Shown: piece after piece, positions 21,650-30,668 of the stretch | Position numbering within the stretch: the stretch's first letter is position 1 | Layout: each line of letters starts with the position of its first letter | Source of the DNA: Cyanophora paradoxa CCMP329 | Lineage: Eukaryota; Plantae; Glaucophyta | Direction of reading: 5' to 3' | NCBI GenBank assembly: GCA_004431415.1 | Contig: QPMI01000061.1 | Location: 1-64,000 of the forward strand | Length of the DNA stretch: 64,000 nucleotides | Translations under genes and position numbers: made by a program | The notes under the pieces: model-generated | Database searches by the model: none | Told to the model about the DNA's origin: nothing | The model's input: the letters and a program-made list of their open reading frames with translations, nothing else

Positions 21650-22093
21650 ATGAAGCGGTCGGTCATCCTCGCCGCTGTCGTCCTGATCGCTTCACTGGCT
21701 GTGGCCTCCGCCGTCAAGCCGGGCCGCCGCCTCATGGTCGAGGACGACGAACAGCGGAAGTCCGAGTGGCCCGAGCTCGTAGGTGCTGCTTTGTCTAGCC
21801 TCTTGTTGCATTCCAAGTCTCCAGCTGCGCAGTCTTAGTCATGCGCGCAGGGCTCGCCGTCGAGGACGCGAAGGCCTTGCTGGAAGCAGAAGGCATCAGC
21901 AAAGTCCAGGTTGTGCCGGAGGGCAGCATGGTGCGCCTGCGCCTACGCCACCTCCTGACCTCCTTGGCCTGAGCCTGCAGCTGGCGCCTATCGCTGACCT
22001 CGCTACGCACAGGTGACGATGGATTGGAACGAGGAGAGGGTCCGCTTGTTCGCTTCAGAGGGCAAGGTCTCGCAGGTCCCGCGGCGCGGGTGA
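21650..22093 (+). CDS. Potato inhibitor I (I13) serine-protease inhibitor, secreted, P1 Met
   Basis: Three exons: MKRSVILAAVVLIASLAVASA (signal peptide)...KSEWPELVGLAVEDAKALLEAEGISKVQVVPEGSMVTMDWNEERVRLFASEGKVSQVPRRG*. Confidence 0.93.
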
Positions 22094-22598: not shown

Positions 22599-25286
22599 TC
22601 AGGGGAAGGCGAAGGTCGGGGTGGCGATGCCGGCGGGGGTGGCGGAGGAGAGGAAGAAGGAGGGCGTGAAGGGGCTCGGGGCCGGCGGCTCCAGGGGCGC
22701 CAGGGGCGGGCTGGAGCGCAGGAGGGAGATGGGGGGCAGCTGGGCGGACTTGGCCCCGGGGTCGGGCCCGGGCGGCTCTTCGGGCAGGGAGGAGAGGCTG
22801 GGGAGCTCGGTGGGGGTATCCAGGGCGCTCGGGGCGCTCCATGGGGCCCCCTCCTTCCCTGCCCCGCGCCCCGAGAGGGCCTCCACCCGCGCGTGCTTCC
22901 CCACCGGCGGCGGCGCCCCGCAAGGCTCCGCCAGCGCCGCCCTCCCCGGGGCCGACTCCTCGGGCGAGCTGCGCGGGCCCCTGCCGCCCCGGCGCGTCGG
23001 CGCGGCGCGCGGGCGGCGAGGAAAGGGCGGGGCGCACGAGGAGCTCGAGGCGTCGTCCGAGGGGGACGGCGTGCGGGGCGCGCTGGCGGGGCCGCGCGAG
23101 GGCCCGCCTCGGGGCGAGGGCCGGGGCCCAGGCGGCGGCGGCGGCGGCGAGGTCCGGGGCGGACTGCGAGTGCAGGTGGCCCTGCATCCCCTGCATCGCC
23201 CGCAGGGGCGCCGCCTCCAGGCCGCCCGGCGCGTGCGGCACGGAGGCCGGACGCGCCAGCATCCGCCGCCCTGGGCGCCCGGCGGGGAGAGCGGCGGCGT
23301 GGCCGAGGGCGTGCTGCTCTCGCTCTGGGTGGAGGGCGGGCCGGCCGCCTCGCCGCCCTCGTCGGGCCGGTCGCGGCGGCGCTTGCGGGGGCGGGCCAGC
23401 GGCTGATGCCGATGTCGCGGGCGATCTGGCGCAGGGCCGACTGGGAAACCCGAGGCGCTCCGACGCCTCCTTCAGCGGCAGGTGCAGCACCGCCTCCACC
23501 GCCTCCCGCGGCGCCTGCCTCGCCCCCGCCCCGCCGCCGGCGGCGCCAGCGGGGCCGCCGACACGGCTGCCGGGGGTGGGGCGGCGGGGCGACGGCGGAG
23601 GCTGCGGCGGCGGCGGCGAGGGCGAGCTGGGCGGAGTGGACGCGGTGGAACTGGTGGCGCTCGAGCTCCGCCTGGAACGCCTGCGTCTGCTGCCACGCCG
23701 ACACCGCCGGCAGCTGCGCCCCGCCCGGCAGCGCCGGCACGCCCCCGGGGCCCGGCGGCGCCGAGCGCGGTCGCCCGGCGGCAGCGGCGGCGGCGGCGTC
23801 GAGGGCGCCGCCGCCGAGGAGGGGCCAGCCGAAGAGGCCGGTTTGGAGCATGGGGTGGATAAGGGAGGCGGCCGGCTGGGGGAACTGGGAGTGGGGTGGG
23901 GGCGGCAGGGGGCCGGGACCCGAAGCGTGGAGGCAGGCGGCGGACGGAGGCCAGGAGGGGGGCACCTCGGGCGAGGCGGACGTAGAGGTCGTGGCCGTAC
24001 CGCAGTCGCTCCCGCCGGCGCTGCTCGCGCTGCTGCTGCCGCCGTTGCTCGTGTCGGGCACGCGGTGCTCGGTCGCCCCCGCACCGGGCTGCGAGGCGCG
24101 CGGGAGGGGCGCCCCGCGGGGCGGCCCGGTGTGCAGCTCGACGACCAGCAGCTCCGTGGTCTCCGCGGCGGTGACTGTCGCGCAGCGCGGCCCGTGCGCG
24201 CGGCTGTGCAGCATCGCCGACTCCCCCGCGGCGTCGCCGGGAAGCAGCAGGCTCCCGAACTTGTACACGTCGTCCTTGGCGATGCGGAGGGCGCCGGAGA
24301 GGACGACGAAGCAGGCCCCGCCGGGGTCGCCCCGCGCGAAGACCGTGGAGGAGGGCGCGAGGTGCGTGACGACGGCGGAGCGCCATATGATGTGGAAGAC
24401 GTCGGCGAACTTGCGGAAGAAGGGGACCTGCTCGAGGTCCAGCCACGCGTCCCCCGCCATCTGAGCGGTCCGCTGCCCTGGCTTCGTCCCGAACAGAGTC
24501 TTCACCGTCGGCGTCATCACCGACGCTGTAAAGATGGGCAGCTCCGTCGGCGCCCGCTCCCGCGCCGGCAGCGGCGGCATCTGCGCCAGCTTCGACAGGA
24601 TAGTCTCCACTTGCACGCGATCCAGCTCCGCCGGCCTGCGTGCGCTCCTGCATTCAGATGCGTCCTCGCGGGGCGAAGACCTGCCCAGGAAGCCCTGGCG
24701 AACCGTGCGGCGAACAGGACGATGACTCGCGAAACTGCGCCGCCTGGCGGTGCGAGCGGGATGGCGAGCGCCTGCGCGCATTCAGAGTTAGCTCATTGAC
24801 CGCTCTGGATGCAGATTCCCTGAAGATGCCGTCGGACCTGTCGCAGGCCGGCCCGGCGAGCGTTCGATGTTCGGGAGAACAACTTCGCCGGCAGGACTGA
24901 TACATCGGTCTCCCAGACAACGTGGTTGGTTTCCGCACATCTACCTACAATATCCATGCCCTCGGCAAACTTGATTGACCTGCGGGGCGGTGAGGGACCG
25001 GGCGCGAGCGAGCGGCTGGCTGTGCGGCACCTGCTGGATTCTTTGAATTCTGCTAGTTGTACAGCACGTTCTGAAAGCACCGACGATGACAACCAGCCCT
25101 CCGGGGAGCAGAAAAAGAGGGCATTGCCCTCGCCCACGGCGGATGCGTTGCGCTCCCACGCTTCTCCTGCACGGCGAGACGATTAGGATGCGATGCGCCG
25201 CGCCAAATCGCCGGCGGCCAAAGGGCCGCACCATACACATAGCCGTGGCGCGCCCCGCATTCCTCCAATATTGCGTTTATACCCAT
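22599..25286 (-). CDS. RWP-RK transcription factor with N-terminal GAF-like domain and central cyclic-nucleotide-binding domain (apparent frameshifts in the 3' half)
   Basis: GAF-like: ILEECGARHGYVYGEAW...FKESSRSIKFAEGMDIVGRCAETNHVVWETDV...ARRAGLRQALAIPL. cNMP: VFARGDPGGACFVVLSG...GESAMLHSRAHGPRCATV. RWP-RK: LHLPLKEASERLG(V)SQSALRQIARDIGISRWP. Confidence 0.85.
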
Positions 25287-25501
25287 TGCGCGCTACTCGT
25301 GGTTAACGCGTGGTTGTGCCGCGCTTCATCGGCGGCGGCGGCGGCCGCGGGATGGCGCAGAGCTGGCGCCGGACTCTGTAGTCTCGATAGAGGTTGTACC
25401 CCACCTCCCCAAGTCGAGCGGCTGAGAGCGATCGGTCCTCACTGTGCTTGTGAAAGTGCGACAAGGTCGGTTGGAAGCGTCCTTGATCTTACGATTACTA
25501 A

Positions 25502-25696
25502 GTTAGCCAGGGCGCCGGCGTCCTTGATCTGCGATTACGATCGTAACTAGCTATAGGACGCCTTAGCTTTTGATCTGCGATTACGATTACTAAGCTTTTT
25601 AAGTTCAACGCCGTGACGGTTAGCCAGGGCGTCCTTGATCTGCGATTACGATCGTAACTATAGCTAGCTATAGGACGCCTTAGCTTTTGATCTGCG
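25502..25696. repeat. Imperfect direct repeat of about 78 bp (25502-25579, 25619-25696), each copy hairpin-forming
   Basis: gttagccagggc...gtccttgatctgcgattacgatcgtaac...ctataggacgccttagcttttgatctgcg occurs twice. Each copy has ggcgtcct/aggacgcc arms around the palindrome ttacgatcgtaa. Confidence 0.85.
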
Positions 25697-25919
25697 CATA
25701 GCGCATAGCCCCCTAGGGCCCGGCTGGCCAGTTCGCTGGTGGGCTGGGCCCGCGGCCGCGGCGGCCGCAGTGTACATTCCCACACTTGTAGCCCGGACCT
25801 GCGTTTTGAGTACGTGTCCAAATGCGAACTGCACACTGACTTGCCGTAACCTCGGCGAATCCAAGATCCTGCAGCTCTAGATCCGGAGCGGAGGCTCGAG
25901 GCCCAGGGCGACTCACGTA

Positions 25920-26066
25920 GCTATAGTGTTGCACGTCGCACGTTAAACTAAAAGCCGCGCGTTAAACTAACACTGCGGTACTAGCTAAAGCTATAGTGTT
26001 GCACGTCGCACGTTTAACAACACCGTACGCGTGCACAGTTCAACAAATTAAACTAAAAGCCGCGCG
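25920..26066. repeat. Short intergenic direct repeats
   Basis: gctatagtgttgcacgtcgcacgtt occurs twice and taaactaaaagccgcgcg occurs twice. Confidence 0.8.
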
Positions 26067-26339
26067 CGCGCAGCCCCGGCCGCACTGCGGCAGCGCCGCG
26101 GCGCACGTCGCGTGCGGCGCCGGCGCGCGGCGCGCGCCGCAGTGCGCGGGCCGTTGATCGCCGAGCCGGATGCAGCGTTGGCTGCAGCTGCAGCTTCTGC
26201 CGCGTCGGGGGGCCCGGCCGGCGCGCGGCGGGCCGGCGCCTGGAAAATGCGAACTTCCACCGGACCTTGCAATCGAAGCGGAGATATGGAACGTAGAAAC
26301 GACTGTGCACCGCGGCGGCCGCGATCGCGGGGCGTGGCG

Positions 26340-28398
26340 CTACGCTAACCGGAAGACGAGGGCGCTGTGGTCGTCGGAGCCGGTGACGATCGTGTTGCCG
26401 TCCCTGCGCGCGCCCTCGGATCCGGAGGGCGGGGTCGGGGGCGGGGAAGGGGGCGGAGCGGGGCGGGCCTGGAGACGGCGAGGGAGAGGATGGAGTCGCG
26501 GTGGCCGGAGAGGGAGCGGACGCACTGCCCGTTGCGGGCGTCCCACACGCGCAGCACGCCGTCCGTCGCCGCCGTGTACACGAACGGCTGGCTCTCGTGC
26601 CACGCCAGCCTCAGCACCTGGTTCCCCTCCTGCGCCCCCTCGCCTCGGGCCCCGCCCGGCGCGGCGCGGCGGCAGGGGCCGGCGGGGCGCCGGGGCGGCG
26701 CACGCCGTGCTCGCAGGTCTGGCGGAGGGCCATCGTGGTGAGGTCCCAGACCCGCAGCGTGCTGTCCAGCGAGCAGCTCGCCGCCAGCGGCAGCCTGCGC
26801 CGCCTCAGCGCGCCCCCGGCGCCCAGCAGCGGCCGGCGCACGAGCTGCAGAAGCCGACGTCCTCGATGCCGGCGCCGTGGCCGGCGAGCGCGCCCCGCAC
26901 CTGCGCGCAGATCAGGCGCCGGCCGGTGGCCAAGAAGGGGGGCCTGGGGGGGGGGGGGGGGGGGGGGGGGGGTGCGGGCCTTGGCGCCATCGATCTGGAG
27001 ACGATGACTGAGGAGTCCTCGCTGCCCGAGATCACCAGCGCCCCCTCCCGGTTCACGCTCAGGCACGTCACCGGGCCCTCGTGGAAGCCCCGCCCTGCTC
27101 CCCGCGCTCACAGGGGAGGCCGAGGCCCGGGCGGCCGGCGCGCGCACCGCCGAGGGCGCCGATGCCGCTGCCGTCGCGCGGGCTCCACGTCCGCACGGTC
27201 CCGTCCGCGGAGCCCGTGACCACGGTCTTGCCTGCGCGAGCGCTCGGCCGCCGGCCCGGGGGCGAGCGCGCGGCCGGGGCCGGGGCCGGCACCGTCCGGG
27301 GTGAAGCCGCCGCACGTGACCGGCCCGCTGTGCCCCGCAAAAACCTGCCGCCCCGGCCGCCTCAGCGGATCTGCGGCCTGGGGATGGAGGATGGGGAACT
27401 GCGCGCCTGCATGCACTTGGTGGTCGGGGCGTTCCACATCCACACTGTCCCGTCCTCCGAGCCGCCGAGGAGCACGTAGCCCTTGGGGTGCCAGTCCACC
27501 CACTGGCGGCACGCGGCGCGCCTCAGGCAAGGGAGCGGATGCGGCGGGCCGGGGGCGGGGCGCACGGTGAGGTCGGCGGCGGGCCCCTCGAGCGTGCAGT
27601 TCAGGGCCCCCGTCTCGACGTTCCAGACCTTGGCCGTCCCGTCCATCCCCGCCGTCGCCACCAGCTTCCCGTCGAAGCTGAACTTCAGGTTCGCCACCGT
27701 GTCCGTGTGCCCTGCGCGCGCCTCGCGCCCGGCGAGGGCGCCGCGAGGGCAGCCGGCGCGGACCCTGCAGCCGGTGGAGGGCCTGGCCCGTCGCAATGTT
27801 CCAAACGTACGCGACGTCGTCGCCGCCGCCCGACGCCGCGAGCTCCGGGTTCGAGGGGTGCAGGGCCACGCAGTACACTGGGTCTGCGGCCCGCGGCGTC
27901 AGTGGCGGCGCTGGCGTCGTGATTGTGGACCTCGGGCGCAATACGGCGCGCTGCGAAACGCACCCTTGTGCTCTCTAAACTGCGCGGCAGACTCATCTTT
28001 GACATCCACGAGCTCCTGATCCCCGCCCTCATCGACTGCGTTCTCGTCGATGGCGCCAAGCGCATCGTCGTCCGCATCCTCTGCAGCAAAGCGGGCGCGT
28101 TCATTGTGTGAGAATCAGCCGCATACGCGGCGCCCGCGGCGCGGGGCGGCGCTCACCCATCTCGACCCCCATGTTGTCGAGCTCCACCTCCTCGATGACA
28201 TCCTCGTCAGCGAGATACTCGCCCTCATCCAAATCCGCGTCATCCTGGTCCCGCGCGTCGCCCGTCTGCGCCAGAAAGCACGATCGGGCGCGCGAGGCGG
28301 GCGGGGGGCGGGGGCGCTTCTGCAGCGCGCGAATCGATTCGGGCAGCTAGCTACAGCCCGCAGCGCACCCGAGTGGGATCACTGCTCGTTCCTGCCAT
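26340..28398 (-). CDS. AAMP: WD40 protein, AAMP/Sqt1 (uL16 chaperone) orthologue
   Basis: Acidic N-terminus followed by AASGGGDDVAYVW, GHTDTV...LVATAGMDG, LEGP...WVDWHPKGYVLLGGSEDGTVWMW, VFAGHSGPVTCGGFTPDGK, LRQTCEH, TGSDDHSALVF. Start codon tentative; one apparent 1-bp indel near 26997. Confidence 0.9.
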
Positions 28399-28439: not shown

Positions 28440-29443
28440 ATGGCCAGAGGCTCCGGAGCTCGAGCCAGCGCGCCAGCAATCCAGCTTCGCGGACCTGCAT
28501 ATGCTGCTGTTGCAGGCCTAACTGTCGCGGCGGCGCGTCCGACAAGCCTGTCGGCACCTTACACGGCCAGCCATGGCCAGCTCCGCGCGGCACGGCACGA
28601 AAAGATCGGGTTGCAGCTTCAGAAGCCCCGCCGACCGCGCCGGCGCCCGAGCTTCGAGTGCGTGTGCAACGTAGAGCGAACGGACCAGAGCGCCGGCGAG
28701 GGCTCGCAGTCGTCAAGTGGAAGAAGGACCTTCATCGGCGTCTCGATGACGCAGTTGACGGGCGTGATCGCGTCCGCCAGCGCCGCGCACGGAGGCACCG
28801 TCCGGGAATACGACGTTGGTGCGCTTTCTCGATCTAGTTTGCCGCCCCGAGCGACCGCGTCCCATCGACCGTCGGGCGCGACGCAGATCCATCGGGGCAG
28901 TTCCGAACGCTCCCGAGCGGCCTGATGGTGAAGGACTTCAATGAGGGGTCCGGGGCAGACATCAAGGCGGGCGATGTCGTCCGGGTGCGCGGCACGGGAC
29001 GGCTCGTCAATCGAGATGGATACGTCTTCTGGCGCACCGTGCGGCCCCCAGGCCCCGCCACGTACGCCCGGAAGCCGCAGCCCAGCGCCCTCCGCAGTCC
29101 GAGCTGGAGGAGGGGTACTACGAGGTGGACACGGGGGAGGCGGGGGTGATCGCTGGTCTCAGGGAGGGCCTCGTCGGCATGCGCGCGGGCGGCGTCCGCC
29201 GCGTGATCGTACCCCCGGGGCCCCTCACCTACGCCGAGGGCGTCGAGCAGCCGTACCCCTCCTCCTTCCAGGTGCGCTGCGCATGCCCTCGAGCTCAGTG
29301 GCCTCCTCGACCCCGCGCCTACTCCGCCAACCCCGCCGGGCTCGAGCTCGCAGGGGGAGCGGCTGCTGCGGTCAGTGCTGGACAACGGGTACAGGGACTG
29401 CACAATTTCGTTCGATCTGCAGGTCGTCCGCGTCCGGCCCTAA
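28440..29443 (+). CDS. FKBP-type peptidyl-prolyl isomerase, thylakoid-lumen type
   Basis: TLPSGLMVKDFNEGSG, VIAGLREGLVGMRAGGVRRVIVPP, TISFDLQVV. Bipartite leader with twin-Arg motif SGRRTFIG followed by a hydrophobic stretch. Confidence 0.9.
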
Positions 29444-29690
29444 GGCCCGCCCCCCCGCCCCCTCGGCCTCTGCTCCGTTGGCGCGTTGAAATCTTCGCTC
29501 ACTTTGCATTGCACACTGTACAGAAAACAATAGACACGACTCTACATGCTGCAGCGCTGCCCCCCCACACACCCCTCTACATGCTTCCCCGTTCTCCGAT
29601 CCCCCACATCATCCCCGAAAAAATGGAGCCTCCCCCGCCGAAAAAAAGCGCGGCCGGGGGGCGTGTCGCGGGCGGCGGCGGCGGGGGCGA

Positions 29691-30668
29691 TCACGCGAAG
29701 GCGAGCTCCTCGGCGTCCTCCTGCGGGGCGCGAGGGTGAGCGGGGCGCCGACGGGGGCGGAGAAGGGGCGCGGCGCACGGCCTCCCAGGCCAGGGCGACG
29801 AGGTCCGCCACGTCCGCCTCGCACAGGGCCGCCCCCGCCGGCGCCCCCTGCGCCCCGACCTCACCACTCGAGAGAGCGCGGGGCGTGCGGCGGGCGGCGG
29901 CGCGGGCTGACCTCGAGCGGGAGGGCCTCTTCCGCGTCGGCGAGCAGCTGCCCCGCCTCGTCCAGCTGCTGCTCCGGGCCCCTGCGCCGGCCACCGGATC
30001 AAATCCAGCGCCGGGGGCGACGGCGCGGGGCCGGCGGGGCGGGGGGCGCACGTCTGGCGGCTGGCGGAGATGACGCTGAGGAGGGAGCTGTAGTAGCGGG
30101 AGCCCAGGGCCGAGGCCTCGAGGAGCTCCTCCTGGTTGGTCTCCTCGTCGAGCTCGCGGCTCGTCTCGGCGCGGATGATGTCGAACGCCGCCTCCGTCGT
30201 GTTGTGGTTCACCGTCGGGTGCGCCGCAAGGATGTCCTCAAAGAGCTCCGACGCCGCCGCCCGCTCCATCTCCAGCTCCGCCCGGCTCATCCTCGACGGC
30301 CGCGCCGCCTCCGGCTCCCTGGACATTCGGCGTCAAAATAAGGCGTATGTGATGCGAATGAACGCTTAGAGTGCTCTAGAGGACCGAGGGCGAAGCGAGG
30401 ACGAGTAACCGCCGAGTAACCGCTTTCCCGCCTAATCACACCGTTCCGCGGCGACTTAGGCCAGGCTCTGCGAGTACGCGCCGCTACACGCATCGGCACG
30501 CTCCTGCTTAGACCCTACGCTCTCGTACGCGGTGGGAAAAGCGGGCCTCGGCGGGGCATGATTTTTAACTTCAGCCTCGGAGCGTTTCCGACGAGGGGAC
30601 GACGTTCGTGTGCTAGTGTGACGGCGAACGCACGGGAGAACAATTTCATCAACGTAGCGGAACGCCAT
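29691..30668 (-). CDS. Hypothetical acidic, alpha-helical protein
   Basis: Coding-like exon 30050-30326 (ELEMERAAASELFEDILAAHP...) with typical flanking introns, ending QEDAEELAFA*. The 5' exons (MAFRYVDEIV... at 30668) are tentative. Confidence 0.5.

Follow-up and report, generated by a model that had tools for sequence, protein, structure and literature searches.

A glaucophyte RWP-RK protein that joins a GAF domain and a lidless cyclic-nucleotide-binding domain on one expressed chain

NIN-like proteins (NLPs) are defined by an RWP-RK domain plus a PB1 domain (PMC7569760), and a recent survey placed them as a gain of Phragmoplastophyta (PMC11712027). It has been reported that NLP7 binds nitrate in its NreA-like GAF region (PMC13766177, PMC11062454, PMC9731675), where H-L-Y residues form the nitrate pocket (PMC9731675), and that the GAF domain of Chlamydomonas NIT2 does not bind nitrate (PMC4620153). 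In Chlamydomonas, cGMP has been implicated in the control of nitrate genes and was proposed to act on NIT2 (PMC4620153). When we compared these systems with gene tig00000237_g20459 of the glaucophyte Cyanophora paradoxa, which lies on the minus strand of the 64,000-nucleotide stretch of contig QPMI01000061.1 analysed here (the window), NIT2 was alike in combining a GAF with an RWP-RK domain, in its long low-complexity regions and in having no PB1, but it has no described cyclic-nucleotide-binding (cNMP) domain. Plant NLPs such as Arabidopsis NLP7 contain PB1, whereas the Cyanophora protein and its two scanned paralogues do not, and here a cNMP domain follows a single GAF. Since PB1 is absent from it, tig00000237_g20459 is an NLP/NIT2-like variant and not an NLP proper.

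The usual view is that eukaryotic cAMP and cGMP signals arrive at genes by way of kinases, GEFs or channels. The cNMP domains of Epac2, PKG, PKA and MloK1 share with the one described here the N-terminal helices, the beta-barrel and the cassette with Glu and Arg (for Epac2, Z 12.7 and rmsd 2.4-3.2), but they differ in possessing a hinge and a C-helix and in being joined to a kinase, GEF or channel and not to a transcription factor. In PKG and HCN, the hinge and C-helix cap the ligand and transmit the conformational change (PMC4412288, PMC5115869), and the capping residues matter for nucleotide affinity (PMC4412288). The bacterial CRP/FNR proteins are alike in concept, with a cNMP and a DNA-binding domain on one chain. 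However, their C-helix dimer and winged HTH are absent from tig00000237_g20459, whose DNA-binding fold differs; a Pfam scan gave no match to any HTH family in it, and the cNMP domain is followed instead by 210 disordered Pro/Ala-rich residues. The two architectures are not homologous.

Gene structure and errors in the reference

We aligned public reads to the locus, using one run of DNA and three of the RNA type, drawn from two studies. The alignments revealed that tig00000237_g20459 is one expressed, spliced gene, whose transcript was seen in the three RNA runs of both studies and whose coding exons are all covered by spliced RNA contigs, one of them 3387 nt long. The corrected open reading frame encodes 795 amino acids from the ATG at 25286, immediately 5' of which lies an in-frame stop, to the stop at 22599, and it is open throughout. 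The encoded protein contains, in this order, the GAF domain, the cNMP domain, a low-complexity linker and a divergent RWP-RK domain, and is rich in Pro, Ala and Ser outside its domains. The earlier note, made from the DNA letters alone, had proposed an NLP/NIT2-like protein in which a cNMP domain lies between GAF and RWP-RK, and this was borne out, since all three domains lie in a single reading frame where that note had placed them. It had also predicted four short introns in the 5' part; all four are supported by RNA (65, 51, 66 and 68 nt for introns 1 to 4), and a fifth coding intron was added. All five coding introns are of the GT..AG type. The gene is organized as follows.

25232 to 25386, minus strand: exon 1, with the 5' UTR from at least 25386, the ATG at 25286 and residues 1-19 (RNA contigs X15/X16/X17)
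25031 to 25166, minus strand: exon 2, GAF, completing the YGEAW motif (RNA contigs)
24838 to 24979, minus strand: exon 3, GAF core (RNA contigs)
24704 to 24771, minus strand: exon 4, 68 nt, last strands of the GAF (inferred from a coordinate gap)
23038 to 24635, minus strand: exon 5, end of the GAF, the whole cNMP domain, the Pro/Ala-rich linker, the RWP-RK domain and all seven exonic indels
22981 to 23037, minus strand: intron 5, coding, 57 nt, GT..AG
22599 to 22980, minus strand: coding part of exon 6, a Pro/Ser-rich tail without PB1, with the stop TGA at 22601-22599; the 3' UTR runs on

Exon 4 was placed from a 68-nt gap in the RNA contig coordinates, the fit of its borders to GT..AG and the same exon in the public model, and the YGEAW motif is assembled across intron 1. 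The cNMP and RWP-RK domains share exon 5 and the GAF exons are spliced to it in frame, which rules out that the domains lie on separate transcripts.

The reference sequence itself breaks the frame. Within 560 bp (23019-23577), nine single bases are omitted from G/C runs, and seven of these are exonic frameshifts, each a single base missing from a G/C homopolymer. All four runs insert a base after 23577, 23528, 23448, 23386, 23268, 23110 and 23099, while the runs and the reference show zero substitutions over 4.6 kb. The same single-base corrections appear in DNA and in RNA, which shows that the frameshifts come from the assembly and are not lesions of the gene. A pseudogene is ruled out by the open 795-aa frame, the clean splicing and the correction of the frameshifts by reads. 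Thus, two of the outcomes that the earlier note had named as fatal to its proposal, real frameshifts in a pseudogene and separate transcripts, do not hold.

The C. paradoxa genome is a PacBio assembly of ~68% GC (PMC6704402), and the GC content of the window is 57-83%. The EukProt record tig00000237_g20459.t1 (P0001), a model of 694 aa, is identical to the 5' part of the gene and matches the corrected protein over residues 1-481. To bridge the assembly errors, the model contains introns that do not exist, and half of the RWP-RK domain is missing from it. As a result, surveys by domain do not see the gene, and the number of transcription factors counted in this assembly may be an underestimate. 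Our similarity searches used the exon pieces of the window and the public record P0001, not the joined 795-aa model.

GAF and RWP-RK domains

The two domains at the ends of the architecture occupy the following positions.

24583 to 25286, minus strand: GAF domain of the NLP / bHLH-MYC_N / bacterial "YGEAW" subfamily, residues 1-152, exons 1-5
23379 to 23508, minus strand: RWP-RK DNA-binding domain, residues 511-554, with a one-residue insertion in its signature

The presence of the GAF domain, which the earlier note had recognized from scattered pieces, was supported by profile matches and by its modelled fold. Residues 1-152 matched Pfam GAF_NLP with an E value of 1.1e-4 (22.2 bits, cut-off 24.1) and GAF_2 with 3.6e-4, just under the curated cut-off, and the bHLH-MYC_N match was likewise just below its cut-off. 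Paralogue P0006 reached 25.3 bits against GAF_NLP, and bacterial GAFs of the "YGEAW" subfamily scored higher. In an Atlas feature search with the GAF, streptophyte GAF_NLP clusters ranked first (0.93). The closest sequences form a tight bacterial subfamily within sensor kinases and cyclases, with the consensus Y-G-E-A-W ... G-L-P-G-R-V-W ... P-E-W ... F-x-R, which occurs in cyanobacteria, planctomycetes and acidobacteria, among others. In a tree obtained with a quick method, the four glaucophyte GAFs formed two pairs at an open fork, and a cyanobacterial donor cannot be claimed from it.

When we modelled the domain by AlphaFold with an alignment of the bacterial subfamily, a GAF fold was obtained with a pLDDT of 93 and a pTM of 0.89. 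Among solved structures, it matched EGL3 and MYC3 best, in each case the N-terminal domain that docks other proteins (TM ~0.74; Z up to 14.7), with TM values of 0.73-0.75 for EGL3 and a Z of 14.7 for MYC3; NreA (Z 12.5), PDE6 and other GAFs followed with Z values of 12-13.7. EGL3 and MYC3 belong to the bHLH-MYC N-terminal type and differ in carrying a bHLH instead of an RWP-RK domain and in binding MYB or JAZ peptides. Since the closest folds are docking domains, the GAF fold gives no pointer to nitrate, and dimerisation or partner docking is the most likely role of this GAF. The suggestion in the earlier note that the GAF might sense a nitrogen molecule found no support, in view of the single GAF, the protein-binding nearest folds and the reported lack of nitrate binding by the NIT2 GAF (PMC4620153).

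The RWP-RK domain was likewise confirmed. Its two halves, split by a frameshift in the reference, aligned to different parts of PF02042, one to positions 5-23 with 13 bits and the other to positions 24-42 with 23.9 bits. When the read-corrected segment was compared with a profile made of 26 independent RWP-RK domains, it scored 38 bits (E 5e-14). The three homologues described below scored 58-77 bits, above the cut-off. The signature R-W-P-A-P-R-K is one residue longer than the canonical R/K-W-P-x-R-K; two residues separate Trp-Pro from Arg, compared with one in 28 of 28 comparable domains, and the extra base is supported by the reads. Two residues found in all three homologues, a Lys and a Cys, are replaced here, while the hydrophobic core and Trp-Pro are kept. 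A K-R-R-R basic stretch at the end of the domain is a possible nuclear localisation signal. A PDB search found no RWP-RK structure. This protein also deviates from the G-L-P-G-R...P-E-W motif that marks the GAF subfamily, and by sequence comparison it is the most drifted of the four family members; the Gloeochaete protein and tig00000113_g5675 are better experimental subjects.

The cNMP domain and its missing lid

The central domain and its cassette were located as follows.

24134 to 24511, minus strand: cNMP-binding domain, residues ~176-301, with N-terminal helices and beta-barrel, without hinge or C-helix
24176 to 24226, minus strand: phosphate-binding cassette with Gly271, Glu272 and Arg284

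The domain is of the eukaryote type and matched PF00027 above the cut-off (E 1.2e-11). By sequence it matched MloK1 (E 3.5e-5), PKA-R and Epac2, and by structure the domains of PKG, Epac2, KCNH and HCN. The barrel, the N-terminal helices and the Gly-Glu...Arg cassette of a canonical cNMP domain are all present. However, the hinge (alphaB) and the capping alphaC helix are missing beyond the last barrel strand. The cassette is also longer than usual, with 11 residues from Glu to Arg here and 9 in the homologues, compared with the usual 8 (108 of 138 domains). The residue after the cassette Arg is Cys, which does not discriminate cAMP from cGMP.

The loss of the lid is shared by the family. All four members contain a Pro at Arg+21/22, whereas none of 133 other cNMP domains does, and 87 of these 133 have an aromatic residue at Arg+20. 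In tig00000237_g20459, Gly occupies the position of the hinge Phe and is followed by Pro-Pro. The hinge scores of the four proteins lie at or near the bottom 2-6% of the other domains, and for tig00000237_g20459 only 2 of the 133 score lower. In the predicted model, the chain is coil from residue 302 onwards (pLDDT below 50); the two-domain model of GAF and cNMP reached a pLDDT of 60, at which domain packing is not reliable. The truncation is not an artefact of the gene model, since it lies inside an RNA-confirmed exon here and the Gloeochaete sequence comes from a transcriptome. A hinge and lid lost throughout a family make an unusual structural variant by themselves.

Because the hinge and C-helix are absent in all four proteins, high-affinity cyclic-nucleotide binding and classical allostery are doubtful. 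The earlier note had described the phosphate-binding cassette as intact, which is correct for Gly271-Glu272/Arg284 but does not extend to the hinge and C-helix. Its proposal of a cAMP or cGMP input is weakened in the same way, given a family without the alphaB and alphaC capping helices (PMC4412288, PMC5115869), while the cassette is kept. The cassette Gly-Glu and Arg are invariant among proteins of only 24-29% identity, which argues for selection on the pocket.

Homologues, alternative readings and neighbouring genes

To find relatives, a HMMER scan of 1.84 billion representatives was performed with residues 1-305 (GAF and cNMP) as the query. Three proteins matched across both domains (E 2-3e-13): tig00000042_g15646 and tig00000113_g5675 of Cyanophora and an MMETSP protein of Gloeochaete wittrockiana (P0005, MMETSP0308). 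Together with the query, they were the only four proteins with both GAF and cNMP among the best 150 of 588 matches at E 0.001, and weaker members may be unseen. Thus, the layout of GAF, cNMP and RWP-RK is shared by no fewer than three genes of Cyanophora and one of Gloeochaete. The four cNMP domains form one weakly supported branch (SH-aLRT 82), and the linker between GAF and cNMP is short and of similar length in all four.

The Gloeochaete protein contains a PB1-like domain at its C-terminus (residues 897-980, E 2.3e-4, 81 of 84 profile positions; 21.5 bits, cut-off 23.6), so that its order is GAF, cNMP, RWP-RK and PB1-like, which is the order of plant NLPs plus a cNMP domain. In the Atlas, the clusters closest to the Gloeochaete protein consist of GAF/RWP-RK/PB1 proteins from streptophytes and chlorophytes; the score is low (0.80), and we take it as a lead only. 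Neither exon 6 nor the tails of the Cyanophora paralogues P0004 and P0006 gave a PB1 match. The relevance of the family to the origin of NLPs, raised in the earlier note, is strengthened by the PB1-like end, and the Gloeochaete protein bears on when the NLP architecture arose (cf. PMC11712027).

The full combination was not found outside glaucophytes among the best 150 of the 588 matches or in 80 metagenomic RWP-RK loci. None of the 80 loci, which are mostly redundant copies and include many short contigs, has a GAF or cNMP domain near RWP-RK, and a GAF pattern scan of metagenomes gave no match. Searches by word index gave nothing beyond the query itself and bacterial GAFs; since they missed the known paralogues too, little weight can be given to their negative results. 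Two metagenome contigs (L009 and L012) contain ORFs with two tandem RWP-RK domains. We found no description of RWP-RK combined with a cNMP domain in the literature searched, where subscription journals were mostly uncovered and beside which automated annotations exist; the novelty supposed in the earlier note stands provisionally.

The reading we prefer, in which we place about even confidence, is that tig00000237_g20459 belongs to a group of glaucophyte NLP-like transcription factors whose activity is adjusted by cNMP binding that is either weak or capped in trans. In this reading, GAF, short linker and cNMP domain would make up a single compact regulatory unit at the N-terminus, which 200-440 disordered residues (the family range) would tether to RWP-RK, and cAMP or cGMP would bind the conserved Glu/Arg cassette. 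A conserved cassette without a lid suggests that binding is weak or that another domain or subunit provides the cap, and the affinity would probably be micromolar or poorer unless the GAF or a second subunit supplies a capping residue. Capping across domains is known in PKA-R. As the hinge and C-helix are gone, the signal would pass not through a C-helix but from the cassette and N-terminal helices to the GAF, which may serve dimerisation or partner docking. The output might be release of autoinhibition or, as in NLP7, an altered binding of partners or retention in the nucleus, and would not be rigid allostery of the CRP kind.

An RWP-RK protein with a cNMP pocket of its own may place genes under direct second-messenger control, and such a factor would be a short-cut from cAMP or cGMP to genes. 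Since the route by which cGMP reaches algal nitrate genes was stated as unknown (PMC4620153), the combination is a candidate for that route, and nitrogen genes are plausible targets, though solely by analogy with the family. A broader proposal seems possible to us, but we lean against it: that glaucophytes possess nuclear factors whose lidless cNMP domain binds cAMP or cGMP directly, with the GAF or a partner subunit as its cap, as a eukaryotic counterpart of CRP on an RWP-RK scaffold. In this proposal, the GAF, RWP-RK and PB1 layout of Gloeochaete would date the NLP-type architecture back to the common ancestor of Archaeplastida, at a time before it served nitrate sensing.

Here, we need to consider that the cNMP fold could be a homology domain that binds no ligand, or another one, and serves as a structural or protein-interaction module of a NIT2/NLP-like factor. 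KCNH channels and CRP-fold proteins such as NtcA, which binds 2-oxoglutarate, are precedents, and the family-wide loss of hinge and C-helix, the lengthened cassette and the KCNH cNMP-homology domains among the structural matches all point in this direction. However, non-binding homology domains usually lose the Glu and Arg, whereas these residues, which bind the ribose and the cyclic phosphate, are invariant in four proteins of ~25-29% identity from two genera, and we regard this explanation as rather unlikely. It is also conceivable that the protein is only a drifting member of a functional family and no longer binds DNA specifically. Any activity left to it would then be that of a dominant-negative partner of its paralogues or a ligand sink for them. 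All three domains depart from the family consensus, including the insertion in the RWP-RK signature, and PB1 is absent from the public model and the RNA. The intact 795-aa frame, the clean splicing, the RNA in three runs of two studies and the retained RWP-RK hydrophobic core and Trp-Pro (38 bits) speak against such decay, which we consider very unlikely.

A true dual-ligand sensor, in which the GAF binds nitrate or a nitrogen metabolite, the cNMP domain binds cAMP or cGMP and both gate nitrate-assimilation genes, appears improbable. GAF_NLP is the best Pfam and Atlas match of the GAF, NreA is among its structural matches (Z 12.5), C. paradoxa possesses NRT2, NR and NiR (PMC4620153) and the Gloeochaete homologue has an NLP-like order of GAF, RWP-RK and PB1, all of which would fit such a sensor. 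However, NreA ranks under EGL3 and MYC3 and level with unrelated GAFs, the protein has a single GAF while the nitrate residues of NLP7 sit in its second GAF, and the immediate neighbour genes are not nitrate genes. In addition, the GAF of NIT2 is reported not to bind nitrate (PMC4620153).

Several features surround the gene. On the plus strand, ORF pieces at 28925-29740 resemble an FKBP-type peptidyl-prolyl isomerase by eye, and one piece that was scanned gave no Pfam match. The upstream neighbour on the same strand (26340-28100, minus) is a multi-exon WD40-repeat gene (PF00400, E 1.2e-14), whose 3' end is expressed in the RNA runs. On the other side, a small three-exon gene at 21650-22093 (plus strand) encodes a probably secreted protease inhibitor of the potato-inhibitor-I family (PF00280, E 1.5e-4 on exon 3) and is convergent with tig00000237_g20459. 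The RNA contigs of these two genes are merged, which indicates that their 3' UTRs probably overlap, as has been reported for other Cyanophora genes (PMC6704402); the merging is confined to the 3' end and leaves the coding part of tig00000237_g20459 unaffected. Upstream of the latter, at 25500-26070, short direct repeats of 33-36 nt occur in two near-identical copies, and the region ~25650-25830 contains a high-copy element with a summed depth of ~36,000 compared with ~100 in the DNA run, possibly a MITE or another dispersed promoter repeat.
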